Positions 4,730 to 49,254 of a DNA stretch of 64,000 nt are shown here, one piece after another (the stretch's first letter is position 1; every line of letters begins with the position of its first letter). The notes beneath the pieces were generated by a model. It saw only the letters and a list, made by a program, of their open reading frames with translations. It was not told where the DNA came from and made no database searches. The DNA lies in the NCBI GenBank assembly GCA_002269645.1, contig NIVC01000721.1:62001-126000 (forward strand). Direction: 5' to 3'. Made by a program: the position numbers and the translations under genes. The stretch comes from Macrostomum lignano. Taxonomy: Eukaryota.

Positions 4730-7208
4730 GCCTAATGGAAAGTAAAAACTTACATTTCAATAAAACAATCAATGGACAATTAACCTTTGGTTTGTGGTTT
4801 TTACTCACTTGCACTTAACAACCAATTTGATTAAAAAAAAACACTCTAATAAACAAAACTTATGTAGCTTTAGCAATTAGCAAATGCTGTTTGCTTTTTA
4901 AATGTTGAATGATTTGTTGATTTGTTGATTTGAATGAATGTTATTATTATATATCTATTCACTAAAATTATTTCTAGGAAATTAAAGACAATAATAAAAA
5001 ATCATATATTCTGAATAATCTGATGTCAATTAAATGGTTTATGGATAGGCAAAAAAGTATGCTAGGGATAAAACTATACCTAAATCATATTTTGCTTCAA
5101 AATATATCCTATACCTAAACTCAAGTTTAGTTATTTCTTAAGATAAAAAAAGAAATTTAAATTTAAATTATAATGGAAAAGCTAGAACAATTTTAAAGAT
5201 GAAATTATTAATATACAAAAAAAGTTTTAAAAGCTAAAATAAAAAAATCTTTTTTCTGTTTTCATTAAAAAATACGGAAATATTGATTTCTAACTATGAA
5301 CATAAGAAATTAATGTATACCTATATATGCAATTATAGAGACAAGCATTCTAGAAACTTCTATACTCTCATTAAATGCCAGATTTGGCAATTTTTTAAAA
5401 AACTTTTTAATATATACTGTATCAAGTTTGTAAATAAATGCATATATCCCATAATAGCATAACTAAGACTCTTACTACTATTGCTCTGCTTTACTACTAT
5501 CACTATTACAATATTTAACTACATATATATTTCTCCTTGATGCTAAGCATTTCTTAAACTAAACAAAAAATTAAAAACATTGCTTTTTTAGTTTAAAGAA
5601 TTGTTGTTGCTATTAAGCCAACTGAATAATTCTAGTGGACTATTTAGTAAATTAAGTTTGATAACTATAGTATATAGCAGAAAAGTGGGGTATATCAAAA
5701 TATAGGCCTCCCCCTAACACTAGATATTTAGGAAAAGTAAACATTAGCCATTACCTATATTGCTTTTCATTATCTACCAAATAATATAGTATCTGCCAGA
5801 GTATTTGCAAAAATAAAGAACAAAACAAAAAAAATTAAAACCGAATATAAGACACAATACCTTGTATATTTTCAGTCTGGCCAAACCAAAAAAAACAAGC
5901 TAATATTGATAGTGGCCTACTAGTCTTTTTCTTTCATAATGGCTTGCTTGAATAAATTTTATTCCTTCACCTCCTAAGGGTTGAATAAAGAGATAATAAA
6001 AATTTGAAAAAAATAAAGGAAAATGAAAAACTCTTCCTGCTGCCTAAATTGTCCGCATATCATTTACCATTTAAGCTGAAAAAGATATTAGTGAAAAAGA
6101 TATTTAAAGAATGCACCTATAGTTAGCTATAAAGCTTACAGAAATTGGTATTATTTGCTGAAAGCGAGCAAGTACTGTTAATGGATTGCGCGCGAGCGAT
6201 CAACTGGTCGCCAATCCACAACGCGATTTCGCATGACGTGCATATGTGCATGATGGTCACGTCAAGTGCGAATCCCAAAATTTTAAATGTAAATAAAAAG
6301 AAAAACCATTTGCTAATTTTTCATAAATTTGACTTTAACTAATCTACTTTGATGACAAAAGAAGTTTTACAGCCTTTGATATATAAAGAAAAGTTTTACT
6401 TACGACAGGTTTTGTTAACTTGCACTTAATTGTAACTTTTTAAACTGCCTTGCTTACAAGAAATAGTTTTCGTTTTTACCAAAACTGCCTTTGCCTGCCA
6501 TGGATTGTTTATTGTAATTGTATTGTCATAATTAAAAGACATCAAAAAAAGAAGATATAAACTGAAAATATGTTGCAAAACTATACCTCAGCATAAAATT
6601 AAAAGTAGGATTAACTCTAAAAGCACTCTAAGAGCTGTCATATCTTTGTATCTTTGTGAAGGAATTCCTTCCTTCAATTGTCAATTTTAATGACAAATGA
6701 GTAATAGAGACACGAACTAAGTGTGAGTGGCTGTTTACGAAGTCTAGACAGACAGCACATCAGTTCAAACTTCGAATAGAATAGAAAAATAGGGGAACTG
6801 GCAGCAAAGGAAAGTGGGGTGGTGGAGCTGGCCAACAGCGGGGGTACATATGTACGTTGAAAGGGCTGACTGTACAGTGGAATCGGACTCTCTGAGAATG
6901 CATCAAATTATGATAAAATATTTTTTAATTCTGGTTCCTCAGCATCAAATATTCTGAGATATTCCAGAAATTTGTTGAGGGGAAAATTCTGGAGGGTAAA
7001 GACCCCAGGGGGGGGGTAGAGGGGGCGGCTCTGTATTGTGGCAAAAATACACTTGGTCCTCCCTTTGATTTTCTTCAGGTCTCCACCTAAGGGGGCAACC
7101 ACTCCCTACCCCCCTTCTGGGTGCACCCTGTGGCCTGTGGTCTTAGACTAAACACCTCATCTAGCCTTCAAGTAGAAAAAAGTTGCCCACCCTTGCTAGA
7201 TATATATC

Positions 7209-7336
7209 TAGCAACAGTCAAAAGTTCTATCCACCAAACAAATATATATCTATTCACCTCTTACCATGCATTTTAAATGAAAAGTTTCTTACTAACTATG
7301 CGTGATTTGTACATGTGGAACTTTTGACTATTGCTA
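7209..7336. mobile_element. Small MITE-like element with ~19-bp terminal inverted repeats
   Basis: tagcaacagtcaaaagttc (7209-7227) versus gaacttttgactattgcta (7318-7336): 18/19 complementary. Confidence 0.55.
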
Positions 7337-8424
7337 AGTATATCAAAGATTATCATACTATTACAACATGGTCATAATTCACAACAAAGCACATTTAAAT
7401 TATGTTGAAATATCTAATATAAGTTATGTTATATAAGTGATATTATGTAAATAGATAACCAGAAATAAAAACAAATCTACATAAAATCAGGCAATAAAAT
7501 GGCATATTGTAGTAGCCTGTCAGTCTATAATTGGTATTCCTGCATGTTTAACTACTAGCTTGCCTAGTTGGGGGTTGGGTATACTTAGTTAGCCAGCCAG
7601 ACCAACTGATCTAAGTTGGGTTTTTCACTGACTTTAAAGCCTTTATTTTGATTATGCAACACCTTGCCTTTTAACTATCTTGCTCTCTTTAAGTAAACCA
7701 ACTTACCATTTTAGCACTTACTCAATCTGGGATATGCTTACTATTTGAAGGATGCTTGCTAGCTGAGTGATACTTGCTATGTAAGGGATGCTTACTATTT
7801 GGAAGGATGCTTGCTGTCTAGGAGACACTTTCTTTTTAAGGGAAATGCCTGCTATCTTTGTGAAGGCTTTATTTTGTTGTGTCCTTTTGTTACTTTTAGA
7901 AAAAAAGAGATTCATAGCAAACATCTTTATCTGTGTCAATTTTACTTGAATAAGGTGATTTATTAAACCAAAGAAAGAAATTATTTTTAAGAAATTGTGT
8001 TTTTTAATGGATTTGTGTTAATCATTTTTGCTCTTTGCTTGGTTGCCCCAAATGTGGCACTAGATTGCTAGTCAATTATGTTCATTTCTCATTTGGCCTT
8101 GCCTAATATATGCGAGCTGTCAAAATATTAGATTTTATTTACCATGATGTATAGTTATATAGTTAACAAGACAGATTAGTAGGAGAATATTTGATGGAAA
8201 TAAAATAAAAAAATTTGAAAACTCAGACATGATTTGAAAATTTTAATAAATGATCAATTAATTTTATGGAATCTTATACTCGTAGACTTACAACTTTTAA
8301 ACTTTTTTTTTGAAAGGTCTATTGTGCATTATTGTTTCTCATGTAGAAAACAGTTTAAAAAGATTGCTTTATACTTTCAATACTTTTACTGATTTCAGAT
8401 GACATAATACCCAGTACTAATTCA

Positions 8425-11400
8425 ATGCCATCAAAAAATCGAAACATAGGAGTTGATTGTGGAAATTGTAGCAAACGTTTGCTCCCCGCAAAGTTTGTTT
8501 GCTTTTTCTGGAAAGCAAAGAATGAAGTATATATATCAGTGAAAAACCAATTCAAAGTAGCTGCAATGGCTAGTTTGTACATTGAAAAGGTAGGAGCAAA
8601 GGATGAAGTACGATGTCAATTTTGCAATGCCAGTGTTGGAGTTCAGCTGCCATTCGGACCGCATGGTTCGAATTATATCTCATTAGGAAAGAAAAAAGTC
8701 ATTGTTGGAGGGATTCAATGTGAGCCAAACGACAAAGTTTCCCAGAAATTGATACCACGGCTAAAGAAACAAATCGATGAGGTGAACATGGACACCTTCT
8801 ATGGCAGATCAATAGTCCCTGATTTCGGCAACTGGTCCAGTCTAATAGCTCGCCAAGTCCCAGTTCAGTTCGCTTCGCCCTCTGCTCCTGAGCACTTCGA
8901 CTGGTCCGACCTCCTTGTATCGGACAAAGTGCCACGGACCTACCAGCTGGAGGCTTTCGTTGAGGCACTTCAGCGAGATCTTGTACTGGTGCTGCCCACT
9001 GGCTCAGGCAAGACGCTGGTGGCAGCTCTGCTGCTGGCTCGGATGCGAGCTCTGAACCCGGGACGGATGGGGGCCCTGCTGGTGGAGCGAGTGCCGCTGG
9101 TGTTCCAGCAGGCCAAGGCGCTGGAGGCGGACACTGGGCTAAAAGTGGCCGCGCTGTGCGGAGAAATTATGACCTCTTGGAAAATTCGAGAACTTCTTGA
9201 TGGAGCGCATGATTTGGTAAGCAATCTTGTTATTTTTAACTATTTACCCAAGTCTCGTCTCTCTTAACAAAAAAGCTTTTCCGGATCGTTTTAGGTGGTG
9301 ATCACGGCAGGCGCCCTGCTCTCCCTAATTACTAATCGGCGAATTCCAGACTTGAGCGCGTTTTCATGCATTGTAATCGACGAGTGCCACCACGCGAGTT
9401 CCCCGCGGCACAACTTCCCGCGCGTCCTTAAGCTGAACCACCAACTGCCAGAGGATATGCGACCTCGTTTGCTAGGCTTGACTGCATCGCCTGTTGAACC
9501 TGGAGACGGCGATTCCGAAGGACAGAAGAAACTGCGTCGTCTTTTATCATTTTTTTCTCCTGATTGCGTTGCGTTCCGACCTGCAAAAGCAGAGGAGTCG
9601 GCCGTGCAAACAGTGACCAAGCTCTGTCATCCGTCCTCGCTGCAGATACAATTCGCTGAGGACCTTAGCAAACTTTTAACAGATAGCAACGAAAAACTGA
9701 ACCTTGGCCTACCGATCGGAGAGTCGATGCCTGTGCCAAGCAACCGGCTGCGCATGCTGGCTGGTCAGCTGCGCGGCTTCATCTATAGCGGCCTGCCACA
9801 ATTTCGAAACAACCGAGAAGAGATTCGCGACCTGCTGTGTCTCCTGGCCGCCATGGAAGCATCCCAACTTGTTGGCGTCTCAAAGGCAGCCCCTTTTCTC
9901 GACGACCTTCGCTGCATTTCCACAGCCACCATGCGATTTCGCTCTGATCCAAACTGGCAGCTGGATGTTTCTGAGCGCATGCGGGTGGTCGAAGCCGAGG
10001 CCGCATCGCTGTTGCAGGTCGAGAACAAAGAGTCTCGACTTCTCGTGCTGACGTGGACTCGCCGAACGGCCCGACTGCTGCACGCGCGCCTGTCCGAGCT
10101 CTTCCCGAACCTCAGGCCCCAGCTGGTCGTAGGACGTGGTGGCGCAGACGGCATGGACTGGGACGGCGAGCAGTCAGTGGCTATCGACAGCTTCAATGAC
10201 GGCAGCAGTCGTCTGATTGTGAGCACAGCAGTGCTGGAAGAGGGTCTCGACGTCAGCGCGTGCGACGTTGTTATCAGGTTCGATGCAGCCAAGTCGCTTG
10301 TGCAGCTGTTGCAGAGCCGCGGCCGGGCGCGCAAAAAGGACAGTCGGTTCTTGATGGTCGTCGATGAAAACGAAGCGGCCGCTGCAACTGATTTGAGCGA
10401 AAGAGAAAATATGCTGAACCGTGTGGTGGACGATCACTCGCTTGAAAACGGGGTTCCATCCGAGCTGACGCGGCAAATGGTAAAGCATTTGGCTGAACGA
10501 AAGAGCCCTGTGCAAGCTGCTCGATCTGTTGTAGCTCACTACTCAATGGGATTGACGGGCAAAATGGGAGGCCAGATAATGGTCCAGCTATGCTGCCCCG
10601 AGTTGCAGAGGAAAGACTGCGATAAAGAAGCTTTAATGCTAAGTATTGAGAAAGAAAACTTCGTTAAAGTTCGCTCCATCGATTTGCTATTTGATCAGTG
10701 TGAGAATCATTCTTTGCCTTCTGGGTTGTTTCCACGAGACTCAACAGTCGCTGCCGTGTACTTGGAAACGCACTCAACTTTAGATTCTCCTCTTGGCATT
10801 TATCCCGAATTCGCGCGTCGTTGGTCATTCGAACTGAACAATAAGCCAATTTATGCGATGCCAGACGTGCGAAAAGTGGAAGATTCGGACGATGATTCCA
10901 TTAAAAAATCCGAACGAACAGTTCAGGCTCTTAGTTCCGTTGCTATTGGCCAGTTTCAGACAAAAACTAAAGTAGTTGAGGCGTTGCATATTTCGGAAGA
11001 AAATATCGAATTAGAAATAGATTCTAATCGCAATCTCATTTCAGTATTTTTTCGTGCTGCTGGAGTTTCACTGGTAGTATCAAGCATTGGTGGAACTAAC
11101 GGGTTTGCAATGGTGGACTGGTCCAAAGAATTGATTGCTTTACCTTTGGCAGTAGCGCCAACTATTCTAAAAACTGTGGAACAGGAGGATCAGCAAAACG
11201 ACTGGGATTTCAATCCGATTTCTTCTGAAAGCTTTTGCAACACTGAAGATCTTTCAGGAAAAATTCGTCAGAAATTTGAAACCAATTCTGTACTCATCCT
11301 GCATCTACCAAGAGCCCCTCGATCAGCTGAGCCCCTCGACTGGATGAGACTCCGTGCGACGTTTCCTCTGCCGCTGCTCGATACCCGACTTGAGTCCGAA

Positions 11401-14400
11401 GAGTATGCCTCCCCAGGGGAAAGTGAGACGCTCTTCGAATACTGTCATAGAGTTAAGCCATTCCAGGAATTGTCCGTCCGTGACAAAGCAGAGTTCCAGT
11501 GCCGCTGGCAAATGCAGGCTCTGATTGACAGCCGTCGCTTCCTCATCACTCAAGAATCAGCTGCAGGTATTGAAAATAGAATCGCAGCAGCTGCACAAGC
11601 AGACTCTAAACTCGATAACGACTGCCCAACAAACCTCATTAAACTGGCCAACGCACTGTTGACGTTGTCGGCTACTGGGGATGGCGAAGCCTTCTTTGAA
11701 GATGTGCTTGGAGACCGGCTGAACTCTGCGCTTATTGTTCTCGAGGTGACCGATGAGGATGCGGAAGACGCTGCTGTCGGTCCGCCAGTTGCATGTGGCT
11801 CAGTGCTCGTGAAGCGAGCTGCTGTGACTCCAACAAGAGTGGTATTGTTCCCCGCCACTCCCGTAGCATCGAGTCGCCTTCTGCGTCGGATCCCTCCAGA
11901 AAGACTCGTGATGGTCGCCTTCACCGACGAGTCATGCGGAGTCGTGCGAGGCGGCGGCGTCAATGTTGCCTCTGCTGCTTCAGTCGGTGCTCGATTCACC
12001 AAAGTGCTGCGGGACGGTCTGACTCTGGCCGGACGGAGGTACCGGTTTTTTTCGGCAAGCAGCGGTCAGCTACGAACGAGCCGGTGCTTCTTTGTGGCCG
12101 CAGAGTCTGTCGAGGAAGTGCAGCGACTGCGAGACCAGCTGGTCGAGAATCCGACAGAGTTCCGATCGGTTTCCAAATATCTGTCTCGACTGGGACTTTT
12201 CATACAGCTGACACATGGGTAGCCAAATTAGAGACCAACCAAGTATCGAAATGTATTGACCATCGAGCTCTCAATGACGACCTTCTGACGGACGGTGAGT
12301 ATCAGTTCGTGCATGTATATGAGCTTTAATGTGCATTGTGCACAGCAAATTTTGACCTCGCAAAGCATTCGCACATTGCAGGAAGCGGGAAAATCAGCTC
12401 AGAACTCGCTATGTCAATTAAATCCAAACTGGACCTGCCAGAGCTACCGTTTGCCTTCCAATTTCGCTTTGGTGGAGCCAAAGGAGTCCTGACCACTGTC
12501 TCCGATAAGGACCCAAATCTAGGACTTCAGCAAGGAATCTTGCTGAGACCATCCACTGTGAAGTTCAAAAGCTCAGACACAAACTTGTGCATTGTCGGAA
12601 CGTCTCAGTGCGGTAGACTTTGCCTCAACAGAGAGATCATCACTCTGCTGGAGGCGCTGGCCTCCAAGTGTGACAGCTGGAACCCGTCGCAACGTCTGCG
12701 AAACATTCTCGACGCGGAACTGCGAAAAATAGCCGAGTCTCTAGCGACTCCTTCGGCAGCCACCGCGGCACTTCGAGAATTTATTGACAAACCGAGCTTG
12801 GCAACAGCGAGTGTTGTGGAAGCTGCGCGACACTTCAACTTTCTGACCGATCCGCACTGGCTCGGTCTGCTGCGATGCGTTTTCCGATTTCGGCTGTCCG
12901 ACCTGCAGAAGCGAGCTGCTCTGCCAGTGGGCGACCTCGGTTGTCGCGTAATGGGCGCACCTGATCCGCTAGAAGTGCTGGCTGAGGGCCAGGTGTTTCT
13001 TCGAATCAAGCGGAAACCCAGTGATCAGGCTAAGCAGATTGAGGGTCCAGTGCTGATATATCGAAACCCATGCCTGCATCCGGGAGACGTTCGAGTGGTG
13101 CAGGCCGTGGCCAAACCGCAGCTGTGTGGGTGGCTTAACCTGCTGCTGCTTCCTTCGCGCACTGACTGCCGCCGCTCACTGGCTGCCGATTGCAGCGGCG
13201 GTGACCTCGACGGAGACCAGTTTGGAGTTGTGTGGGACCCGGAGCTCGTGCCGCCTCTAGAGGCAGTCCACGAACCTCTGGACTATGCGAAGCTGGCATC
13301 AAACGAGCCACAGCTACCCGAAGGAGCTGACGTTACGAACCCAGTCTTGCTGGCCAACTTCTGCGCACAGAACTTTGCGAACAGCTTTCTTGGTCGAGTA
13401 GCGAATTTGCACCTGGCCATTTGTGATCAGCTGCCTGGTGGCGCCCTCAACCAGTTGGCGATCGAAGTTGCAAAGGCTCAATCGGTCGCAGTCGACTTTC
13501 CAAAGACAGGAATCGTACCGGAGGTGCCTGAAGCAGCAGTAAAATTCGTTAAAGAGAAAGGCTACCCAGACTTCATGGAGCGCTCTGATTCCTACCCTTC
13601 AGATAAGCTTCTGGGTCAGTTGTACCGAAGATGCCGCTCCTGCGACCTGGATTGGGATCTGCTGGACTCGATCGATCAAGAAAATCAACAGTACGAGTAC
13701 GATGTGACATGGGCCGGTCAGGAGAAGTTTTTGAAAAGCGCCAGTCGGCTGTTTGAGCTCTACCGCTCTGATCTGCGGGCACTGATGTCGCAGTGGGGCG
13801 CAAGAAGCGACAGGGAGCTGCAGCTCGGTCGCTGCTTTCAGTGGCACCCGCTGCTTCGAACAGATCGTGGTCGCGCTCACATAGCCATGCGGCAGGGGTT
13901 TGACGCTTTGGGCAACAAGTACCGGCGAATATTCGATCAACTTGCTGGGGACGACCAGAACAAACGCAGAGCTCAGGCAGCTGCATGGTTTGCAGTGGCG
14001 TACAAAAGTGTCGGGACCTCGAAGGCGAAGAAGCCACGAGGTTTAAGTTTCCCGTGGGTCGTGACCGACGTTTTGTGTGAAATTCGGTCTCACGGCATGT
14101 CGACCTCTGTACTGCAGACCGGCAGCGCGTCACTGCAGTCAATTGATGAAGGTCTCGAAGTGTCGATCGGTCGCTCGGTCTTTGCCTTCTTCCGCAAATC
14201 TCTTCCGGGTCTGCGCGATGCAGTCGGTCGTGCCGACGCAGCCGCCGCACTGGTCAGCGGTCGCCTGTCCAGCAGTGTGCAGGAGTGCTCAGTTGCAAGG
14301 TGTATGGCTCAGCCTCGATTCTTGTGTGTGATGAGGCTTCATCAGACATCGACTTGTGTGTGCTACCTCTTGATAAAGCGTACTCTGAGCCGTGGCTTCC

Positions 14401-17400
14401 CGCAGAGGTTTCTGTACTGGGAGAATGCGCTCGCCATCGTCATTGGCTCGAGACGCTTGTGTGGCCCTCACTGGATGCTGCAGTGTTGGAAAAGACTCGA
14501 TACCTCGATCGCCAAGTTCCGTTGATTCGATGCCGTCTTGGACTGGACGGCGGTGAGGACGTGGATGATGGCCAGGAGTGCGACATCAGTATGAACAGTG
14601 TAGGTCTGGGAAAGACGCGCTACCTTCTCAGCTTGTACAGTCGCTGTCCGTGGCGGCTACCTTTGCTGTGGCTGCTGGTTCAGTGGGCGAGGGCAGCTGG
14701 AATCGTTCGGTCATCAAGTGAGAGCCAGGGCTGATGCCTACAGCCGAGTTTTACGCTCTTGTTCTGCATTGCTTTTCTGAGTTCGACGAAGTCGCAAGCA
14801 ACTTCGAGGAAAGTAATAAATGTCTGCTTGATCTATCATTGTCTGAGCGCCTAGCTTTTTGATGGACCGGCTGACTGATAAAGCTTCGGATGCGAATTTT
14901 GCCTTTTTGGGCAGCTGCATACTACGTTTTGTTCGGTTTTGCAGTGAATTGTCCGGTGCCGTGACGTACAAGTGGCAAAGAGTTGAATCCGCTTCATCGG
15001 TTCAGATTTCGGCTGAGGTCGTTAGAGGCGTGGCGGAACTTGCGGACGTTGCCTCTCGCGTTCTCGTCTACACCCACAGCGCAGCGTCCATTGTGTCTTC
15101 CGCCGCAATTATTTCAAGTCTCTCTGGAAAAGCCATTCGGCTGACACAGCGTTTGCCCGGAATTTTAAGCACTGAAATGTTGCGATCCCTTCGCTTTCAC
15201 GAGACACGTTTGCGCTTGACTACCGGATGTGATTCTGTACAACTGGAAGAGACCACAGGATCGCGCCGACTTCTGATACGGGCAATCGGAGCCCCGTCAG
15301 CTATCGATCGCCTTCGACATGAACTCCGCGAACTGTCTGCTAGATTTGGCTTGTCTGGCAGCTGGACGAGGAAGTACAACAACGGTTTGCGCTACTTTTT
15401 GGAGGGAGGTGGAACCGTCATGGCCACTCGATGTCTTTCAAACAGTTGTCGGATCGAGCTAATTGATCACCTTGGCTCAGTGAATGTTGAGCATCAAATG
15501 CATGATGTTTGCGTTCCGCTGTGTCTCGGGACGGATGGTATTGATTTTACATCATGGACAGATGAAGCCGCGCGTCGCTTATTCGCTCTGATGTGTCGCC
15601 AGTTTTCTCGCCTGCGATCATCCAGGTCTGAATGCCAAGTTTCTGCAATGCTAAAAGACCTGGAACTTTCAGTTCGCGTTGGCCGAGTTTATTTCCTAAA
15701 CGCAACTAACGGTCTTCCTGACAACCGCCGTAGCATATCTCTAGCTGAGCTGGCAGTAGCACTGGCGGCCGGTAAGAAGTTCCGCAAGGGTTGCGAGCGA
15801 CCCGACTTTCGTCGCCGCGATGCCTCCGATGCCACTAGAAAGCATCGCGCAGAGAAAATGGTTAGTCTTGCGGCTCCTGGCGGCGCATCTCAAGAGCCTC
15901 ATCCGCCGCTTAAACCGGAACGGGCTCCGAAGCCAAACCGTCGAAAGAAATACAAACTAGGCGTTGGCTTTCTAGCTGGAATTGTTGCGGATCTGCATCG
16001 AATTAGCACCGGAGCAACCGTAGAAGTCTACGAGAAGGCCCTGAAATCATTAGGCTATGTAGAAATTCCTAAACAGACAGAGCCGGCTCTGACCGGCTGG
16101 AAGGTGTCCGTGCGCTTGAGCGCTTCCTATCAGGCTCACCTGCAGCATGATCTTTCATTGCAGCTAGTGCGAGTCTACGAGCGACCGCTGAATTGTATTT
16201 ACATGAATGTGCTAGACTCTGATAGGCCTGGCGAGAGAAACTCAGCGATTACAGCCTCCAGCACAGCTGACTGTGAAACTGGAAGTCCAAGTGAAGCCAT
16301 CGGATTGGAAAATGCGCCGAGTGAAAAATCGAACTCGCACAAACAGAAAAAGAATAGAAAATTCAAACGCAAGCGCAAAGGCGATAAAAAAGATGGAGAT
16401 GAGTATTATCTCGCTGGTGCGGAACAATCTGCTCGGGATGCAACTCAATCTTTGGACAGAAGAGACGATTTCATTGAAACTCAGGGAGCCGCTGAAACAC
16501 AAACGGTCAGCTCAGGCTTAACAGAGCAGAGGCAGAGCACCAATGTGATGGATGACAGCGCCTGTAGCAATTTAGCAGGCAAACAAGGTAAGACACAAAT
16601 GAAGTCAAAAGGCGTTGTTGCAACCGCTGGAATCATGGAAACTACTTGCGAACAGCGCAAATGTCCAGAAATCGATTGGAGTATACTAAAACATCGAACA
16701 TCAAGAAAGAAAATTGGTGCATGCATTAAAGTCAAAAGCGGAACTGAAAATCTTACAAATGTCAGCACAACCGACGGTGCAACCTCCTCTGAAGTTTTCA
16801 CCGAGGTCGCAACTGGTTGCAGCACTAGCAACGAAGGCTCGTCAGCTAAGACCAACCAGAGGGGTCAAAGAGGTCAAGAACGCGGCCCAAAAGCAGCTGG
16901 CGTAGTGGAAGCTAAAATAGATACGGAAAGTGTGGAATCCTTGGCAGAATCCAAAAGCGACGCGGAACGCTCAGGTGCAGCAGTGAACGTTTTTTCGAAT
17001 GAGAAGAAATCCAATAAAAACTTCACTTTGATGACTCCTGAAAGTGAATTCTCAGCAACAAGCAGACAGAGTGTCGGTGGTGAAGTGGTAGATGCCGCAG
17101 CTGCAATGCCTCCCAGCGAGTTGACTAAGAAAGATGGCAGACGCCAAAGAAAAGCAGCGTCGAACAACAAATCTTCAAGCAGTGTCGATCAGAGACAAAA
17201 GTGCGCCAATGAAGCCGAATTCTGCGGACGACCGAGCACAGTTGATGCCAGCGGCAGAGCTGCAGCTGCCGGCTACCTGGAGCAGCTGGACTTGCACATT
17301 AACCTGGCCGCGTGCGAACCAGTCCGCCCGAGCATGCACCGGGAACTTTTCCCAGACGGTGAAGAGTTTCCCTATCTGGTCCGAGATCCAACCACTGGCA

Positions 17401-17741
17401 AAGTAGTGATCAGCGACCGGGTGCCAAAGTCGCTGACTGTCCTGGTGACGCGTCAGCGGTCGGTTGTTCGTCAATTTCGCCGTTCGAGCAGCGACGCCGA
17501 AGATGTTTGGCCGGAGTTGCGCATCATCAGCGGCTCGCTGCACTTTGGCGGCGACCAAAATCTCGAGGCGCAGCCGGTGTGCGATTTGTCGATGCACTTT
17601 GACCCAGCGCCGCTGCTGACGGCGGCACAGTACGGTCGGTATGGCAACCTCAGCGGCTACTGCAGACGCCTGATGCAGCTCAGCTTGGAACTGACTAGTG
17701 CGCTCAAGGAGCAAATCCGGCTGGCTGCTGGTGATGGTTAG
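8425..17741 (+). CDS. Large fusion protein (~3,050 aa reconstructed): Zn-binding module + Dicer/RIG-I-like DExH helicase + cellular RNA-dependent RNA polymerase + Cid1/TUTase-like nucleotidyltransferase + unassigned C-terminal region
   Basis: Exons 8425-9216, 9295-12294 and 12382-17741. Intron 9217-9294 (gtaagc..ttttag) joins GAHDL|VVITAG; intron 12295-12381 (gtgagt..ttgcag) rebuilds the RdRP motif LTDG|SGKISSELA. Four -1 frameshifts (~12199, ~14283, ~14730, ~14860) must be corrected for a continuous frame. Confidence 0.85.
8930..10350 (+). other. SF2 DExH helicase domain of Dicer/RIG-I-like type (within the fusion gene)
   Basis: Q motif PRTYQLEA; Walker A LPTGSGKT (8995); Ia VERVPLVFQQ; II VIDECHHA (9379); III LGLTASP; V STAVLEEGLDVSACDVVIRFD; VI QSRGRAR (10312). 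No RNase III, PAZ or CARD motifs were seen. Confidence 0.93.
11810..13950 (+). other. Cellular (QDE-1/RDR/EGO-1-type) RdRP catalytic domain (within the fusion gene)
   Basis: VKRAAVTPTRV, RRYRFFSASSGQLR, SRLGLF, LTDGSGKIS, FQFRFGGAKGVL, YRNPCLHPGDVR, catalytic SGGDLDGDQFGVVWD (DLDGD at 13203-13217), QSVAVDFPKTG, YPDFMER, SDKLLGQLYR. Confidence 0.96.
14285..14960 (+). other. Pol-beta-family terminal nucleotidyltransferase, Cid1/GLD-2/TUT-like (within the fusion gene)
   Basis: KVYGSASILVCDEASSDIDLCV matches G[GS]x9-13DxD (Asp codons at 14345 and 14351). It is followed by VPLIRC, the third Asp in ECDISMNSVGLGKTRYLLSLY (14582), LWLLVQWAR and GLMPTAEFYALVLHC, the motif order seen in Cid1/TUT4/7. 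Confidence 0.85.
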
Positions 17742-17835
17742 AGACTACTGCCTTGTTGTATTAGTTTTTTGCTTTCGTCTTCGATTAGCTACTGACAGCT
17801 AGGGCGTTCGTCTTTGTCCTTTTTTATTCACCCTA

Positions 17836-18148
17836 ATAATAATAATATTAGTAGTAATATTAATAATTGATTACACCTGGCCCAATCAACCGACAGCCCA
17901 GCCGCAGCTATTGCGCGGCGCATCTGAAGGCTGCGTACGGCTGTTCAGTCCAAGGACTGGGGGGGGGGCGCCACATACACCCTCAATTACCCCAGCTAAT
18001 GCTGGCACCCATTTTACAGCTGAGTGAGCTAAAGCAATGCAGAGTTAATTGTCTTGCTCAAGCACACATATTGTTCTAATGGGATAGGGAATCGAACCGC
18101 CGACCTTCAAGTCGCGCGAGTCCGACTCTCTAACCACTAGGCGGCAAC
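17836..18148 (-). mobile_element. tRNA-derived SINE with CORE-like body and (ATT)n-type tail
   Basis: The minus strand reads gcctagtggttagagagtcggactc..ggttcgattccc (A box and B box), then ..cacttaactctgcattgctttagctcactcagctgtaaaatgggtgccagc-like body, shared with the copy at 35275. An AAT-rich tail lies at 17836-17870. Confidence 0.75.
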
Positions 18149-19799
18149 CTCCTTCCTCTGAATATCCGAAACTGCACCGTAGCTCCCGACAAGCAAAGTC
18201 AAAGCTGATAACCAACAAACTCATTTTAAACAATCGGTTTAAATAAAAAAAGTTTAAATTTTTTAAAACATCAATTTCTTTTTTTGCTAAACCTTTTCCC
18301 AAGATTTGGGTGTAAAAACCGGTTCATGCACAGCGTGTTGTGTGCGCTTATTTTTTCATTCATGAAGTTAAACAGTACATTTTTAATCCAGCAGAATACT
18401 ATTTCACATTACAAGCTGTCACAGTATTTTTTTTATATACGCTTTGCAGAATCTCAAATTATTTATACGCTCGTACTTTTCGAAACAGCTTCAATTTTAA
18501 GCTGGTTTAACAGTCACGCTCGCATATTCAGTGTTGCATGGGCAGGTCCCGTTGTTAAGCGTTGATCCGTTGGTATCGGAAGTTACCTTTTATAACAATT
18601 AACGAACCATGGTTACTTCTTTAGGGTAACGCAATAACGAATATATACGTTACTTTTTGTTCATTTCCGTTACTCTTTTTTACTTTTATTGTTTGTTCTC
18701 TACAATTTTTCTACGTCTCATTCAATTTGAATGAATAAAAATGATTCTCAAAACATACCGAAATCCATATTGTCAACAGAAATCATTTCATTTCATTTCA
18801 TTATTGGCTTAGGTGAAGAATGACGCAGAGAGGACCATACCCTAAAATCAGTCTGGTGGACAGAGTGAGCTAGGGTGCATGATGTGTGCATGCTTGACTG
18901 CAGGTGATTTGGAGTTTGATGTTTTTGAATTAAATCAAATTGATAGCGAAAAAACCGAATGATCGATATGAATATATGAGCAAACCACCAAATTTGTAAG
19001 TAGCTACTTTCAACAAGTAAGGAGTTACGGATTCACTCTCTGAAAAATGTACGTTATTTTTATCATTTTTAACGGAATCTATGGCTGCCTTTACCACTTT
19101 TACCACTAACGGAAGTAACTTTTTTAATAACTCTGCTAAACACTGGCTATATTAAATTATTCATTCTGTCTACTCTATAACATTCTTTTATTATATAGAT
19201 TTTTCCTATTGCTATTATTGTTCTTGTTTTTTATGTTAAATGTTTCTAAATAACATTTTCATCTCCAGAACCACCTTTTATCCTTTTTTCAGTGCTGTTT
19301 AGTACCAGAATTTCTAGTATAGTTTTCTAGCGAATCAGCTGCTTTTTCTCGAAAGTGATAGTTGTGGATTCTTTTTAGTATTCCATGTACTAAAAATGCT
19401 ACTCACTTAATTAAACAAACCTTAAATTAACGTTTTGATCTAAAATATTTACACCAAGAACTTTGCCTTTTATCAATACCCTGTTTAATTAATAATTTTA
19501 CGAAACATAGACCGGCCTTCTAATTTTTTTCAACCCGAGGAGAACCCCCACTCCTGACTCTCATGATGGTCAGGTAGCAAAGATGTGGTTCAAGACATTC
19601 TTGGGCTGGTAAGTCTATACACCGTTGAATGCACTATTTATTTACATTATTGAACTCTCAGAAAATACATGCAGCTATATGTATGCAATACTTGCTCGCT
19701 TTTGTCTGGAAATGTGTAAATCTATCGGCAGATAAAACGCTGATGACTATCAGAGCCTTTAAGAGATCCCCAGACTAACTCTTAATGACTTTTCTGCCG

Positions 19800-21870
19800 C
19801 CTGGGACTTGGCTTACTTGACTTAGCTGCAGGGGGCGTCCGGCGGATGCCGCTAGGAGGCGGAAGCCCCTGGCAACCAATGACTTCCATCGAAGCGATGT
19901 CGCTCAGAGGGACCCGTCGGTCTCGCCTGCAGCGCGGTCCTCCTCACCGGCGGTGGGAAGAAGTCAGCTCGTCCCGTGTCCCTGAGGTACCGGGCGAGCA
20001 GCGGGATGCTCTCGGGCCTGCAAACGTCGGAGAGAACCGGGTTTGGCCCCGGGTGAGTGAGCCTGGCCCTGGTGAAACCGGGCAGTGGCAGATAAAGTGC
20101 TCGGCGTTTTCACTGCCTGAGCGGCAGAAGGGGCACCGCTCCTCGGGTACCTGGCCCTGAAGGAAGCGGTGGCGAGAGAAACAGTCATGTCTGGAGAGGG
20201 CCATGCTAACTGCTCTGAGGTCTCTGCGGTTGAGCCTGAGGAGAGCTCACGCAAGAGAGGAGAGGGGCAGGGGACGGCAGCACAGGATTGCCTACAATTC
20301 CGGGTGTCGCGCCACCTGCGGCGGTGCTCGGAATCAGCCCAGTGCTTAACATGGGAAATGATCACCGAGGTGGGGATGAAGGCCCCTGGGCCCGGCCCCA
20401 GCAGCGCGCCGGCGGAGCCAGCCTTAGCCAGCAGGTCAGCGCGCTCGCTGCCGAGGAAACCAGCGTGGCCCGGGATCCATCTGAGCTCCACCTGGTTGCC
20501 TAGCGCAAGCCCATTGAGCTGGACATTGCAGTCCTGCAGGACAGATCTGGAGCTGGTGGTGCTGTGGCAGAGGGCCCGAAGGGCTGCTTGGCTGTCAGAG
20601 TGAAAAATAAACTTCCGACCGCTGAGCTGCCTTCGGCGCAGCTCTGCCGCGCAGGAGCTGATGGCAAGCACCTCGGTCTGAAAAAACACTGGAGTTGAGT
20701 CCAGTGTGCTGGGAGTAGCTCCACACTACTTCTCCCTTGAAGAAGACGCAAGCTCCGAAGCCTGAAAGACCATGCCGAATAGTGACCTTATACCAGGTAC
20801 CTTTGGCTCAGGAGAAGGGTGGCTGGGATCGAGTCCGTGAGGATGTTGAGCCCGCCACACTCCTCGAGAGCCTTGAGGCAGAGGTCAGAGTGCGGGATAA
20901 GCGACCGCTTCTTAAAGGCCCGCACTTTCTTGAAAGCCACGCCAGCATCTAGAAGACGCCGGGTGCTCTTCGCCGCCTCTCCTTTGATATAAATATCCAG
21001 AGGAATGCATTCATGCCTTCAAAAGGGATGAGGGTGGAGCGCCCATAGTCATGCGGCAGGCTCTGCCCTGGATTTTGTAGAGAGCGTCGAGGTTGCTCTT
21101 GACGCTCAGGCCGCTGGCCCATACGAGGCTGGCGTAACTGATCGAGGGCGGATAATGGCTGTGTAAATCCAGCACAGCTTCCTGGGGGTGAGCCCCCAGG
21201 TGGTGCCCACGGCGCGCCTGATTTGAGCCAGGACAACCAGGGCTTTTTGGCTTTAGTTTGAATGTGCGGAGTCCAGTTTAACCTGTGGTCCAGAGTGAGA
21301 CCCAGGCAGCGGACCTGCTTCTCCATGGTATTATGCTTTCCATAGAGGGTGAGTGGGTTCATGGTCCAGAGCAGTTTGTTGGTAAAAATGACCGCTGTGG
21401 TTTTCGACTCTGAGAGTCTAAGGCCAGATTGGCTTGCCCAACGCTCCGCTCGTCTCAGAAAGCCCTGCAGAAGGTCTCTGGTGGTATCAACCGAGGGGCC
21501 CGCGCACATCGCGGTCACATCATCGGCATAGCCTTTATGTGACCTTGAGAATGGGGTCATGGAGATCACTGCAAAGCAACTCATCCATGACCATGTTCTA
21601 AAGAACGGGGTGAGAACCCCGCCCTGGGGGCCCCCCTGGACAGCAGGACAGGCGCCGTAAGAGAGCTGCCGTTCAGGTGGGCCACGACAGTGCGGTTCCG
21701 GATCATGAACATGATCCACCAGACAAGGTGAGGGTGCATGGCCCTGGATTCCAGGGCTCTGCAAAAGGCCTCGAAAATGACATTGTCGCCGCCTGGGACA
21801 GCACCTAACGGCATCATGTCTGGCGTATGGCTTGCATGAGTTTAGAATTCGACTCATCGATATGTTGATT
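19800..21870 (-). mobile_element. 5'-truncated, frameshifted non-LTR retrotransposon with RT, RNase H and C-terminal zinc finger (I/R1/LOA-like group)
   Basis: RT motifs PQGGVLTP, YADD and LGLTLDHRLNWTPHI. RNase H FHSDSQAAL..LRWIPGHAGFLGSERADLLAK. C-terminal CPFC..EHFICHCP. Split over several frames. Confidence 0.9.
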
Positions 21871-26847: not shown

Positions 26848-29800
26848 TGTTATGACTTCTTCTCTAGCGGAAGACAGTGAGTCAAGATCAACAAAGTCAA
26901 CTTAAAAGTTGCACTCTTAGCAGAGCGTCTTATTTCATGTTCGTAACCTTCTTTTTTTATTTCCAAGCTTGAAGCATCGCTTCTTTAGCTTATGGCTGGG
27001 TGTGTGTGCGACTGAGTCGTCTATGGCCACACCCAACATCTCCCCCCTTACAATGGCAAAGAAAGTTTTTTTTTTAAAGTTAATGCGGGAGGAACAAATT
27101 TTAGCACTTATAGTTAACTTTGGGTTTCTCCGAAAGTCGCATGCTTCTCCTGGGTTCAATAGTACCCTCGGGAACCTCAGGGATCGGAGGTGTACGCAGA
27201 TCCTTTTGTTGTGGAGGCTCCTCTTCTTGTTTTCTCCCTGCCGCGTGCTCGCCAGCTCCGGGTGGCATTCTGTCGGTTTCTGCGGGCTCCTCGCCGGTTA
27301 GACTGTACGGATGTAGCTGATCCAAGTGAACCTTCCGATACTTTGAGTTCGGTTCATCTGTCTTGATCATGGCCATGCTCCTTCCAATAGGCAAAAGCAG
27401 TTTTGCAGTGATTGGCTTGTCTCTCTCATTTTTGTAGATAACTGGATCCTCCAGTCCAACTTGCCTCTTGGTAAACGGAACCCTGAGCTTGTGCCCCAGC
27501 AGCTGTTCTGCTGGTGACGATCCCGCTTTGTTGTCTGATGCGCGATAAAACAGCAAGAAGCGGTCAACAGACTCTTGACTGAAGCCATTTGCCTTGATGC
27601 TTTCTTTTAGCGTGCGTACGAAACGCTCTGCAACCCCATTACTTTGTGGGTGATAAGCTGCGATAGTTAGGTACTCACAGTCAATTCCTGCCAACCACTC
27701 TGTAAAGTCCTTGCTGATAAAGCATGGTCCGTTATCTGACACAAGTGTCCTTGGAATTCCAAGCTGAGAAAACGTCCTTCTGACGCACTGAATGACAGTT
27801 CGAGAAGTCATATCTTTGGTGACGTGGACTTCAGGATACCCGCTGTACGAATCTACCAGAACGAGCATGTAGTGGTTGTCGATCGGTCCTGCAAAGTCGA
27901 TATGAACACGATCCCAAGGACCCGCAGCTTCAGGCCAACTGGAGCGAAAATTTCTATTTTGCGGTTTTGCGGTCCTACAGATCTGGCACAAACCGACTGT
28001 CCGTTCGATATCGCTGTCCATGGCTGGCCACCAAAACTCCGCGCGAGCCAAGGACTTGGTGCGGGACATTCCCAAATGAACTTCGTGCACTGCTGCAATC
28101 GCTTTCATGCGTAAGGATTTTGGAATAATGATCCTGTGGCCTCGAAGAATAACATCGTCCTGAACGCAAAGTTCTTCTCGCACATTTTTGAAAGGTCGCA
28201 GTCTAGGGTGTTTGAAGCTTCCTGTCTTTATAGCGCTCTTCAGCAAGCGCATTTCGTTACACCGCTTCGTTGCTAGCCTGATTTCTTCCAGAGACACTGT
28301 AGTTGAAACCGTGTGAATGTTACCAATCTCTAGCGTTTCACCGCTTCTTCCTTGCGGAACCAATCTTGAGAGCGCGTCAGATGCCATAGCTTTAGATTTT
28401 CGATACTCGATCTCGTAATCGTACGCCGTGAGAAATATCGCCCATCTCTGCAGCCTTGCGGACACTCTCGATGGTAGCTCTTTGTCACAGGCTAAGATGT
28501 AAACGAGAGGTCGATGGTCGGTTATTAGCTTAAATTTTCTGTCACAGAGAAAACGATGACATCTTCTAACACCCCATATTATCGCAAGCGCTTCTCGCTC
28601 TATTTGCGAATAATTTCGCTCCGATGATGACAAAAGTTTGCTGATGTACAAGACAGGACGTCCTTGCTGACTCAGGACACCACCAAGGGCAATCTGCGAA
28701 GCGTCTACTTCGAGCTCAACCGGTAGCTTTGGGTCGTACGCATGCAAAGCAGCGTCTTCTGAAAGTGATTTCTGGATGTTTCTGAACGCATCTTGTTCTT
28801 TTGTGCCCCAACGAAACTCCACACCTTTGCGCTTCAGGTGCACCAACGGAGCCGATATTCCAGAAAGGTTTGGAATGAATCACGAGCAGAACGTAATCAG
28901 TCCGAGGAAGGATTCTAACTCGGAAAGATTCTTTGGAGTTTCCATTTCTTTGATCGCCCGCACTTTCTCTCCATCAGGATAAATGCGACCGCTGTCCAGA
29001 ATATGACCCAAAAACCGGACTCGAGATAAGTTCCGTTGGCATTTCTGATCATTTACCTTTAGCCCTTCCGATGCTAGACGGTAAAGTACTTGTTCTTCGC
29101 GTCCTTTCAACTCTGACTCATCGCTTCCACCAATTAATATATCGTCCATGTACGCTATTGTTCCGGGAATACCTTGGATCACTTGCGATATATACCGTTG
29201 GAAAATACTCGGAGCCGTTTTTATTCCAAACACAAGTTTATTGTACTTAAAATTTCCAAATTGTGTCGACATCACGGTTAGCGGTTTAGATGCATCGTCC
29301 AGCTCTACTTGGTTGTACGCTTTCTCTAGATCGATGATACTGTACCGAAAGCATCCCGCCACTGTCGAGAACGCTTCCTCCGGGGTCGGTGTCGGGTAGC
29401 TATCCGGGACCAGCTGTTGATTAAGCGTACTCTTATAGTCCACACATAGCCTGATACTGCCGTTGGGCTTGCCGACTACCACGACTGGAGACGCCCATTC
29501 CGAGAATTTCACAGCTTCGATTATACCTTCATCAAGTAAGCGATCCAATTCCTTTTTTACTGCTTCACGTTGAGCAAATGGTAACGGTCTTGCTTTTACA
29601 TACTTTGGTACTGCTCCGTCTTTAAGTTCCAAATGAGCTTTCATTGTAGTTGCACTTGCTGCCAGAGATGCCATATCCATGGAGACGTCCCCATTATGTC
29701 CTGTGTCCAGCTGTACACAGAGAACATCTCGCCCCAGCAAGGCATAGCTCTTGCTGCCTTTCACTACCTCAAAGTCGATGCGCTGATATTTTCCATTCAG

Positions 29801-31260
29801 TTCTACCACAGCTTCGTATCGACCTAATACCGTGAACTTGTGATCACTTACATAGCCACCCAGTTGTGTATTTGAGTTCTTAAGAGCTGGTCGACCCAAC
29901 TGTTTCCAGAGGGATTCTGACATTATGGACACACCCGCTCCAGTATCCAGCTCGCATGTCAGCGCGTATCTCTTTTGCCCTTCTAGTACGGACACTGTGA
30001 TGGAGATAGGCTTTCGGTGATCCCGATCTGGGCAGCAACTTTGCACTTCAGCGACAAATACTTCGGAATTTTCTTGAACATGTTTTACTGTTGATTTACT
30101 CGTGCCACCGGTCTTTCTATGTGAAAAGTCTGAGCCTCTGCAGGCTTTGGCAAAATGATTAGCCTTGCCACACCGGTTGCAGGTCTTACCATACGCTGGG
30201 CATTTAAACTTTTCATGATTGCCGCCACACTTCTTGCACAGCCGATCCGCCACTGCCGGAGTTTTGAAATCCTTCGACTTGGACCCTGGTTTCCGCGTTG
30301 AGACTTTCAGAACTGTTCCAGAATCTGATTTCGGAGTTGTCTTCATTATCTGCGTTTCCAGCAAACTTGAATGGGCTTCTGCTTCTGCTACCGCCTCTTT
30401 AAATGTGAGTGTTTTATGATCCTTGGTGATCAGCTTTCCAACTATGGCTTGACTGCCAAGACCGCATATGAATTGGTCACGCATTCTCACATCTCTGTTT
30501 TCAAACTCACATTTCTCAGATGCTTTTATTATTCTTTCTGCAAAAGCTCTTACCGGCTCATTGGGTTCACGGCCAATTTTTTGAAATGTAAATCTTTCGG
30601 CCAACACATATGTCGTGGGTATTAACAGTTCTTGTAGTGCTCCTGTTAGTTCCTCAAACGACATCTTGCCAGGCTTTTTTTGGAGACACATAGTCCGCTA
30701 GCTTATTGTAGAGAGCAGGTGACATTCGCATCAGCAGGACATGAGCTCGTGCAGATGCGTCCCAGTTAAATAGGGTGGCTCCGATCTCAAAACGGTCGAG
30801 CCAACGATCCAGAATGGTTGACTCCTCCAACCTTTCAATCTCAGACATACCTGAGGTTTGGCGACTGCTCTGAGTGGCGTTCTGGGCTTGAGCATCCCTT
30901 TCAGTTGCTTGGGACTGTGACCGGTTTTGAGAACCTCCTCCATTACGGCTTGGAGAGATCCCAGCAGACTTGGCCGCTGACTTCGTCGGATCTGCAGACT
31001 TCGTCGGATCCTTGCTCATTATGAGCTTGAACGTCTGACCGTCAGGTTACGATTGCTTGCGACGCCACTGTTATGACTTCTTCTCTAGCGGAAGACAGTG
31101 AGTCAAGATCAACAAAGTCAACTTAAAAGTTGCACTCTTAGTAGAGCGTCTTTATTTCATGTTCGTAACCTTCTTTTTTTATTTCCAAGCTTGAAGCATC
31201 GCTTCTTTAGCTTATGGCTGGGTGTGTGTGCGACTGAGTCGTCTATGGCCACACCCAACA
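26848..31260 (-). mobile_element. Young full-length Ty3/Gypsy LTR retrotransposon, Mag clade
   Basis: LTRs at 26848-27038 and 31069-31260 (TG..CA) differ by one substitution and one homopolymer indel. 5-bp TSD cactt at 26843-26847 and 31261-31265. PPT (taaggggggaga on minus) next to the 3' LTR; tggcg-type PBS next to the 5' LTR. Gag has two zinc knuckles, followed by PR (LDTGAG), RT (YMDD), RH (DASQ) and IN (HIDFAGP, YHPQSNGVAER). Confidence 0.97.
27101..31019 (-). pseudogene. gag-pol ORF of the Mag element, interrupted by one frameshift and one nonsense codon
   Basis: An extra A in an A7 run at ~30675-30681 separates VSPKK from PGKMSFEEL. An in-frame TGA at 28880-28882 lies within LITFCS*FIPNLS, where Arg (CGA) is expected. 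Confidence 0.88.
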
Positions 31261-35274: not shown

Positions 35275-35505
35275 AGGGCCTCGTGGTTTCAGAGCGTCGG
35301 ATTCACGACTGAAAGGTCGGGGGTTCGATTCTCGACTCACTCGGAACAACTTGTGTCCTTGAGCAGGAAGACACTTAACTCTGCATTGCTTCAGTTCACC
35401 CAGCTGTAAAATGGGTGCCAGCATTAGCTGGGGTAATTGAGGGTGTGTGGCGACCCCCCAGTCCTTGGACTGAACAGCCGTACTACGCAGTTCTTCGCAT
35501 ATCGA
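35275..35505 (+). mobile_element. Second copy of the tRNA-derived CORE-like SINE
   Basis: A-box-like cgtggtttcag and B box ggttcgattc. Body tgtgtccttgagcaggaagacacttaactctgcattgcttcagttcacccagctgtaaaatgggtgccagc, homologous to the reverse complement of 17940-18140. Confidence 0.75.
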
Positions 35506-49199: not shown

Positions 49200-49254
49200 T
49201 GCTGAAATTGACCGAATGCCAATAAAACTGTTAGATAAAACGTTTGACGATGAT

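Follow-up and report, generated by a model that had tools for sequence, protein, structure and literature searches.

Can one animal gene encode a helicase, a cellular RNA-dependent RNA polymerase (RdRP), together with a terminal nucleotidyltransferase (NTase), in a single polypeptide? The question is raised by a stretch of the genome of the free-living flatworm Macrostomum lignano (contig NIVC01000721.1, assembly GCA_002269645.1, positions 62,001 to 126,000), whose 64,000 nucleotides were analysed as a whole and are referred to here as the window. An earlier note, made from the letters of the sequence, had proposed such a fusion gene. We found the helicase, RdRP and NTase modules to be collinear on the + strand at window positions 8425-17741 without an intergenic gap, and all the motifs that the note had listed were in place, with support from Pfam, a combination too strong to have arisen by chance. 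The window likely carries one gene, in a single reading frame, for a multi-enzyme protein of about 3,050 residues, and it is highly probable that the gene is intact for all three enzymes and belongs to a helicase-RdRP-NTase family. The domain order is an N-terminal CxxC..CxxC zinc domain, a Dicer/RIG-I-type DExH helicase, a linker, a cellular RdRP with its head, a Cid1/GLD-2-type terminal nucleotidyltransferase, a tentatively assigned KH-like module and a beta-rich tail.

The exons and introns of the gene are as follows.

8425..17741, + strand: whole gene, ATG to TAG, 3 exons and 2 introns, 3,051 codons once one base is added at each of four sites
8425..9216, + strand: exon 1, N-terminal zinc domain and helicase motifs I-Ib
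9217..9294, + strand: intron 1, GTAAGC...TTTTAG, 78 nt, canonical GT..AG, in-frame TAA inside, junction HDL/VVITAG
9295..12294, + strand: exon 2, remaining helicase, linker and first ~155 residues of the RdRP domain, nearly all within one open reading frame (ORF)
12295..12381, + strand: intron 2, GTGAGT...TTGCAG, 87 nt, canonical GT..AG, phase 1, restoring TDG/SGKIS
12382..17741, + strand: exon 3, RdRP catalytic part, RdRP head, NTase and tail

Both introns had been predicted in the earlier note, including the rebuilding of TDG/SGKIS, and both junctions are used by independent M. lignano protein models. The UniProt model P0279, whose start Met is that of the gene, reads GAHDLVVITAGALL across the first junction, and P0279 and a second model, P0121, both read LLTDGSGKISSEL across the second. 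Five large + strand ORFs lie head to tail across 8425-17741. The last of them (960 codons) had no match in the Pfam scan; the other four are listed here.

8425-9267, + strand: first half of the DEAD/ResIII helicase, with PTGSGKT
9295-12222, + strand: 975 codons, second half of the helicase (DECHH, Helicase_C, QSRGRAR) and first ~130 RdRP profile positions, ended by a frameshift at ~12196
12336-14525, + strand: rest of the RdRP (E 3.9e-91), with DLDGD
14285-14734, + strand: sub-threshold match to PF22600, the palm domain of non-canonical poly(A) polymerases

Because the single ORF at 9295-12222 spans both domains, with the helicase N-terminal, it demonstrates the fusion of helicase and RdRP directly. 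For the gene as a whole, a repaired conceptual protein was made from the window sequence by inserting a single nucleotide at every frameshift, four in all, and removing the introns. The repaired frame has 3,051 codons and no internal stop, which agrees with the absence of a stop-to-start gap described in the earlier note; the four indels and the product of ~3,050 residues given there were likewise recovered, correct in every detail.

Each of the four frame breaks was found to be a 1-nt deletion (-1 shift) in a homopolymer, without splice signals. As reference we used a second copy of the locus, L003 (NIVC01001144.1, M. lignano assembly Mlig_3_7), which was aligned base by base to the window and was 99.0% identical over 13.3 kb (window 6129-19384). 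This copy encodes P0121 (BOX15_Mlig023635g1, 1,486 aa), the one match of a profile search with the NTase and tail alignment, 99% identical to the query.

12193..12200 (~12196, CTTTTC), + strand: frameshift 1, one T short, TTTT vs TTTTT in L003; P0121 and P0279 read SRLGLFHTADTW
14265..14270 (~14268, TGTCCAG), + strand: frameshift 2, one C short, CC vs CCC in L003; P0121 reads GRLSQQCAGVLSCKVYGS
14719..14731 (~14727, CCAGGGC), + strand: frameshift 3, one G short, GGG vs GGGG in L003; P0121 reads SESQGLMPTAEF
14843..14860 (~14855, GCTTTTTG), + strand: frameshift 4, one T short, TTTTT vs TTTTTT in L003; P0121 reads SERLAFLMDRLTD

The missing base was present in L003 at all four sites and P0121 read through all of them. 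Since the breaks are absent from a 99%-identical copy, they are most probably consensus errors of long-read assembly; the M. lignano assemblies were built from PacBio reads with Canu/Pilon, and the GenBank annotation is transcriptome-based (PMC5730564). L003 carries frame-breaking indels of its own where the window is open (-1 at 10901, 15622, 16347 and 17483; -2 at 16321; +20 at 16987), and because of these P0121 begins at an internal Met and stops early. Between the two copies we counted 28 coding substitutions, 13 synonymous and 15 non-synonymous (ratio of non-synonymous to synonymous changes per site, pN/pS, 0.37; synonymous excess, binomial p = 0.009), none of them nonsense in 3,051 codons, and divergence was 0.31% in the coding sequence vs 1.17% in the flanks (p = 1e-8). 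The pattern suggests that the gene is probably under constraint and looks functional rather than decayed. We also considered whether the breaks might be tiny introns and rejected this: each measures 1 nt, has no GT..AG and falls within a conserved motif. As a separate observation, window 12581-16209 (RdRP catalytic part, NTase and start of the tail) showed zero substitutions against L003 over 3.6 kb while adjoining coding parts differed, which could reflect gene conversion between the copies or very strong constraint.

The first modules of the protein are the zinc domain and the helicase that follows it.

8455..8790, + strand: zinc domain, CxxC...CxxC-VG..PFGP, N-terminal ~110 residues, four Cys invariant in 15 homologues
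8917..10572, + strand: Dicer/RIG-I-like DExH helicase core, from Pfam and from phmmer matches in the Protein Data Bank (PDB)
8995-9015, + strand: helicase motif PTGSGKT
9379-9393, + strand: helicase motif DECHH
9481-9492, + strand: helicase motif TASP
10312-10332, + strand: helicase motif QSRGRAR

Helicase motifs I, II (DECH), III and VI were thus all found, as PTGSGKT, DECHH, TASP and QSRGRAR, and in the repaired protein Pfam placed DEAD at residues 172-330 (1.4e-16) and Helicase_C at residues 508-609 (9e-12). In phmmer searches of the PDB the best matches were an ancestral Dicer helicase (1.7e-38) and Arabidopsis DCL1 (2.6e-37), followed by LGP2, RIG-I, Dcr-2 and MDA5; residues 4-490 of the LGP2 chain aligned to query residues 171-627, across Hel1, the insertion and Hel2, and entries named Dicer-related helicase matched at 4e-14. 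By these matches the helicase is assigned to the Dicer/RIG-I-like family of helicase superfamily 2 (SF2). The zinc domain gave weak matches to MsrB (E 0.02, borderline, profile vs PDB) and to the Yippee, SelR and beta-tent families, and one homologue, P0291, has a precomputed RIG-I_C-RD match. The C-terminal domain (CTD) of RIG-I belongs to this same fold class, the MsrB/Yippee beta-tent. As a lead, the zinc domain is possibly beta-tent or RIG-I-CTD-like, and it may act as a sensor of RNA ends.

The polymerase follows the linker.

11824..13631, + strand: cellular RdRP domain PF05183 (Pfam), split by intron 2
13203-13217, + strand: DLDGD catalytic loop, invariant in 18 homologues

In the repaired protein the Pfam match covers residues 1108-1681 (E 5.9e-117) and profile positions 1-581 of 582. 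The fold was modelled for a homologue alone: the N-terminal part of the AlphaFold2 model of P0010 matched maize and Arabidopsis RDR2 (E 6e-9). The RdRP is complete with an intact catalytic loop, and it is predicted to copy RNA.

The third enzyme was identified from motifs, a profile search and the fold of a homologue.

14169..14990, + strand: Cid1/GLD-2-type terminal nucleotidyltransferase, palm and PAP-associated/central domain
14303-14311, + strand: YGS, NTase catalytic motif
14342-14356, + strand: SDIDL, NTase D-I-D
14579-14590, + strand: CDIS, third Asp of the NTase

When 18 and 50 homologues were aligned, the G-S, D-x-D and third Asp positions showed either no variation or conservation of at least 90%. 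Pfam model PF22600 scored above its cut-off in orthologues (Hydra, 41.2 bits; Heterostelium, 43.7; Pelomyxa, 30.5; P0009, 29.7), and a profile built from four NTase sequences retrieved CutA (6e-5) and GLD-2 (0.013) from the PDB, as well as Cid1 and Tailor. An AlphaFold2 model was built from a 50-sequence alignment headed by P0010, a homologue 31-35% identical to the M. lignano protein (mean predicted local distance difference test, pLDDT, 81.9). It matched CutA, GLD-2, Cid1, mtPAP, TUT1/7 and Trf4 over ~340 columns with probability 1.0 and a target-normalised template modelling (TM) score of 0.5-0.6. AlphaFold2 applied to the flatworm NTase segment itself, with a four-sequence alignment, gave a pLDDT of 49.5, too poor for fold assignment. 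The identity of the NTase therefore rests on orthologues, the profile search and the fold search, its weak point being the window's own Pfam score. CutA, GLD-2, Cid1, TUT1/4/7, mtPAP and Trf4 share the palm and central domain fold of the P0010 model and the G-S / DxD / D signature; they differ in sequence (10-18% identity) and in that the module of the M. lignano family stands C-terminal to an RdRP head.

Beyond the NTase we distinguished three further parts.

15126..15350, + strand: tentative KH-like beta-alpha-alpha-beta-beta-alpha module directly after the NTase (P0010 model residues 628-694, KH type I topology)
16263..17285, + strand: K/S/E-rich low-complexity insertion of ~340 residues, no Pfam match, absent from homologues of other organisms in the alignment
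17286..17738, + strand: conserved beta-rich C-terminal region (tblastn, 17349-17615 vs P0010 residues 1001-1084)

The KH-like module is without a GXXG loop and gave one weak KH_PARP14_8 match; an FHxxRLxxxTGAxV motif is conserved in it. The beta-rich tail is large and confidently modelled in P0010. Within the low-complexity insertion, L003 was found to differ from the window by 20-nt and 2-nt indels.

How far this architecture extends was assessed with 18 full-length homologues scanned with Pfam and with an exhaustive HMMER search that used P0010 against 50%-identity clusters. DEAD, Helicase_C and RdRP domains were detected in 18/18 homologues and the PF22600 NTase in 17/18 (E < 0.01), and HMMER returned dozens of clusters of proteins 2,000-2,900 aa long that aligned over the C-terminal half of the RdRP, the NTase and the tail. 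The helicase-RdRP-NTase order occurs in full-length proteins of 2,300-2,900 aa, many of them from metagenomic eukaryotes, and the named members are these.

Hydra vulgaris: LOC105846402, 2,566 aa, RefSeq, full-length collinear
Oopsacas minuta (sponge): 2,664 aa, same architecture
Heterostelium album (dictyostelid): 2,852 aa, NTase 43.7 bits
Pythium oligandrum (oomycete): 2,655 aa, same architecture
Pelomyxa schiedti: 2,394 aa, NTase 30.5 bits
Prorocentrum cordatum and Effrenium voratum (dinoflagellates) and Polarella: family members
Sulcionema (diplonemid): family member

BLASTP aligned the M. lignano protein to Hydra LOC105846402 in one piece, from residue 10 to 2547, with ~29% identity, the extra ~340-residue low-complexity insertion being a difference from Hydra; the other named members aligned in one or two pieces. 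On one metagenomic contig (L001), without frameshifts, an ORF with the helicase and the N-terminal half of the RdRP is followed after an intron-sized gap of 110 nt by an ORF with the C-terminal half of the RdRP, the NTase and the tail; since the two ORFs share a single RdRP domain, one protein must contain all modules. In the homologues P0008, P0010 and P0009, uninterrupted ORFs span RdRP and NTase. Judged from these sequences, the gene belongs to an old, widespread eukaryotic family. In Artemia franciscana (CM065074.1, fetched locus, 5306-14229) a helicase model and an RdRP model of the family lie adjacent, collinear and on the same strand, and probably represent a single gene that annotation has divided; in the ~14 kb of this locus beyond the last RdRP match, where introns are long, tblastn detected no NTase.

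These results bear on the novelty that the earlier note had implied. The uniqueness of the layout did not hold: RefSeq, GenBank and UniProt contain the same architecture in Hydra, Oopsacas, Heterostelium, Pelomyxa, Pythium, Prorocentrum and Effrenium and in dozens of clusters, and the search of proteomes that the note had suggested found it widely, though functionally unstudied. Nor does its contrast with a two-domain type represented by Dictyostelium RrpA-C probably exist, as the dictyostelid Heterostelium has the NTase. In the literature, helicase-RdRP fusions have been described as two-domain proteins in Dictyostelium, peronosporomycetes, Hydra and Nematostella (Bollmann 2016, PMC4791657; PMC3661229). 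The class as published (Dictyostelium RrpA/B/C, peronosporomycete RDR, Hydra and Nematostella RDRs) comprises helicase and RdRP domains only, with NTase, zinc domain and tail undescribed. It shares with the M. lignano protein an N-terminal Dicer-type DExH helicase fused to a DLDGD RdRP; the M. lignano protein is collinear with Hydra LOC105846402 from end to end, and Heterostelium, Pelomyxa and Pythium share the overall layout including the NTase region, the likeness being read from these proteins. The published class probably also carries the NTase. Martens (2002) is reportedly a source for this class. Whereas PF22600 (MTPAP-like_central), which we take to be a recent Pfam model, detects the NTase in 17/18 family members, the older PF01909 (NTP_transf_2) does so in 3/18, and this gap probably explains why the NTase is missing from published helicase-RdRP domain diagrams. 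In searchable papers the three-domain protein was not described except in one figure legend of a preprint, which notes a PAP_NTPase domain in two amoebozoan RdRPs; a 2014 RNA interference (RNAi) review by Burroughs and Aravind may hold a prior description. The layout is neither new to databases nor unique to M. lignano; it is essentially undescribed in searchable papers and functionally uncharacterised. The flatworm member is new and is given here full-length for the first time; the database searches made found no full-length public M. lignano model: P0279 covers the N-terminus, helicase and N-terminal half of the RdRP, and P0121 the RdRP and NTase.

What might such a protein do? In Schizosaccharomyces pombe the RNA-directed RNA polymerase complex (RDRC) consists of Rdp1, the helicase Hrr1 and the NTase Cid12; Tetrahymena RDRCs combine Rdr1 with the nucleotidyltransferases Rdn1/2; and in Caenorhabditis elegans RRF-1/EGO-1 act with the Dicer-related helicase DRH-3, while the Cid1-like NTase RDE-3/MUT-2 adds tails that recruit RdRP. 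The M. lignano protein is predicted to have the same activities as the S. pombe and Tetrahymena complexes, an RdRP and a Cid1-family nucleotidyltransferase, with the helicase shared with S. pombe only; there they are separate subunits, whereas here they form one chain. Its helicase is Dicer/RIG-I-like, and the likeness to Hrr1, Cid12 and Rdn is drawn at the level of activity. DRH-3 belongs to the same Dicer/RIG-I-like receptor (RLR) helicase family, but the components of the nematode RdRP module are separate proteins. No RDE-3 orthologue has been found in flatworms (PMC5594548), and the fused NTase could fill this role.

The RDRC analogy is a fair functional hypothesis, as a reasonable reading of these three systems, and on it the protein would work as an RDRC whose parts are joined covalently. 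RNA ends or duplexes would be engaged by its zinc domain and helicase, with ATP driving loading on, or translocation along, template and product; the RdRP would copy target transcripts into antisense or double-stranded RNA (dsRNA) for Dicer and Argonaute; and the NTase would extend the 3' end of either template or product with untemplated nucleotides that mark it, prime it or make it more stable. The protein's biological task would probably be to amplify small RNAs directed against transposons or viruses. Long terminal repeat (LTR) elements make up 21% of the M. lignano genome (PMC5730564), Dictyostelium RrpC is required for the 5' spreading of small interfering RNAs (siRNAs; PMC3661229), and four M. 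lignano RdRPs have been reported, with their architecture undescribed (PMC5594548; PMC8191739). That the role is specifically siRNA amplification we would put at even odds, by analogy.

Several observations weigh against this picture of an intact, amplifying enzyme. The window's own NTase segment falls below the curated PF22600 cut-off (22 vs 27 bits). In the low-complexity tail L003 is 20 nt longer at one site and 2 nt shorter at another, differences that are atypical of polishing errors, and some copies may be truly decaying. Nematostella has RdRPs, yet no secondary siRNAs were detected after injection of dsRNA (PMC12768352), so that the presence of an RdRP is no guarantee of amplification; and M. 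lignano Piwi-interacting RNAs (piRNAs) show ping-pong signatures and no sign of RdRP involvement (PMC8191739). Read most severely, the locus could be a decaying pseudogene, its four frameshifts real and the copy silent. Four breaks within 9.2 kb, a sister copy with indels of its own (one of 20 nt), and the highly duplicated, neopolyploid genome of M. lignano with its many redundant copies, any of which could decay (PMC5730564), would fit such a history, but it is very unlikely: all four breaks are -1 homopolymer deletions restored in L003, the indels of the two copies are mutually exclusive as independent PacBio consensus errors would be, no nonsense substitution has arisen, pN/pS is 0.37, coding divergence is four-fold below that of the flanks, and no substitution separates the copies between 12581 and 16209. 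Equally little probability attaches to the idea of a separate protein for NTase and tail, produced through an internal promoter, spliced-leader (SL) trans-splicing, alternative polyadenylation or proteolysis, so that no single-chain machine exists in vivo. M. lignano does trans-splice 39% of its genes and cut transcriptional units into genes (PMC5730564), and the public models P0279 and P0121 are fragments. The ends of these models coincide with assembly indels in their contigs, however; after the 1-nt correction neither a stop nor a gap lies between RdRP head and NTase, P0121, a transcript-based annotation, has both in one coding sequence, the ORFs of P0008, P0010 and P0009 run through uninterrupted, and Hydra (RefSeq), Oopsacas, Heterostelium and others have the full length in a single protein.

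Granting a single intact chain, the NTase fold might bind RNA or serve as a scaffold without catalysis, as it does in trypanosome RESC1/2, and the helicase-RdRP would then not tail RNA. RESC1 and RESC2 were among the top structural matches of the P0010 model, and Pfam scores are weak in several members including the M. lignano protein; against this, the active CutA, GLD-2, Cid1, mtPAP, TUT7 and Trf4 matched equally well over ~340 aligned columns, and the G-S, both DxD Asp and the third Asp are kept in 18 and in 50 divergent homologues (without exception or in at least 90%), and the window has all of them, as YGS, SDIDL and CDIS. We regard an inactive NTase as improbable. A similarly low probability applies to the view that the gene is not ancestral to flatworms and came by horizontal transfer from a protist or with a contaminant contig. 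Planarians and parasitic flatworms lack RdRPs (PMC5594548; bioRxiv 2026.03.11.711021), and the M. lignano protein fell outside the Hydra and sponge clades, next to a diplonemid or dinoflagellates, with under 30% bootstrap; yet its best-scoring named homologue is that of Hydra, and RdRPs occur in other basal flatworms and gastrotrichs too (PMC8191739). The tree in question, a quick neighbour-joining tree that places the protein inside the three-domain family and gives its sister group a bootstrap below 30%, is too weak to choose between vertical descent and ancient transfer. Contamination itself was excluded: claudin-family and Brix genes and Ty3/gypsy elements stand in the same 64-kb stretch, the gene has spliceosomal introns, and it occurs in two independent assemblies. 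The animal-type genome assumed in the earlier note is thus M. lignano, with the claudin-family and Brix genes on the same window. The single-chain enzyme gene remains our preferred reading, and its surroundings in the window are as follows.

20949-21857, - strand: further reverse transcriptase (RT) fragment
27101-30691, - strand: Ty3/gypsy pol region (protease, RT, RNase H, integrase), two ORFs split by one in-frame stop
48483-49715, - strand: claudin/PMP-22-family gene, single 410-codon ORF
53321-53974, - strand: Brix-domain ribosome-biogenesis gene, match ending at profile position 160 of 193, near the ORF end

What comes after this match in the Brix gene may be an intron or a further error of assembly. 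The 3' end of the three-enzyme gene is followed closely by a tRNA-derived repeat resembling a short interspersed nuclear element (SINE; ~17870-18140), which recurs in reverse orientation, with 84% identity, at 35278-35483.

To our knowledge, RdRP-based small-RNA amplification in animals is well understood in nematodes only, where the tailing enzyme, the helicase and the RdRP are distinct proteins. Both RNAi and transgenesis work in M. lignano, and with a bilaterian gene that links all three activities covalently, one knock-down or set of point mutants could test the coupling of tailing and copying. For genome annotation the finding means that the public M. lignano models of the gene are cut at assembly indels, and for the wider field that the domain diagrams of Dictyostelium, oomycete and cnidarian RdRPs may be incomplete, the NTase being almost unmentioned in searchable helicase-RdRP papers. 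A broader proposal, which we put forward tentatively and think rather less probable than its opposite, is that every member of the helicase-RdRP class (Dictyostelium Rrp, oomycete RDR, cnidarian RDR) is a five-module single-chain RDRC inherited from an early eukaryote, with a RIG-I-CTD-like zinc sensor, Dicer-type helicase, RdRP, terminal nucleotidyltransferase, and KH-like module plus tail, and that in fission yeast, ciliates and nematodes the RDRCs with separate subunits are derived split versions. If that were true, M. lignano would be a tractable bilaterian that keeps the fused form and could be used to learn the role of built-in tailing.

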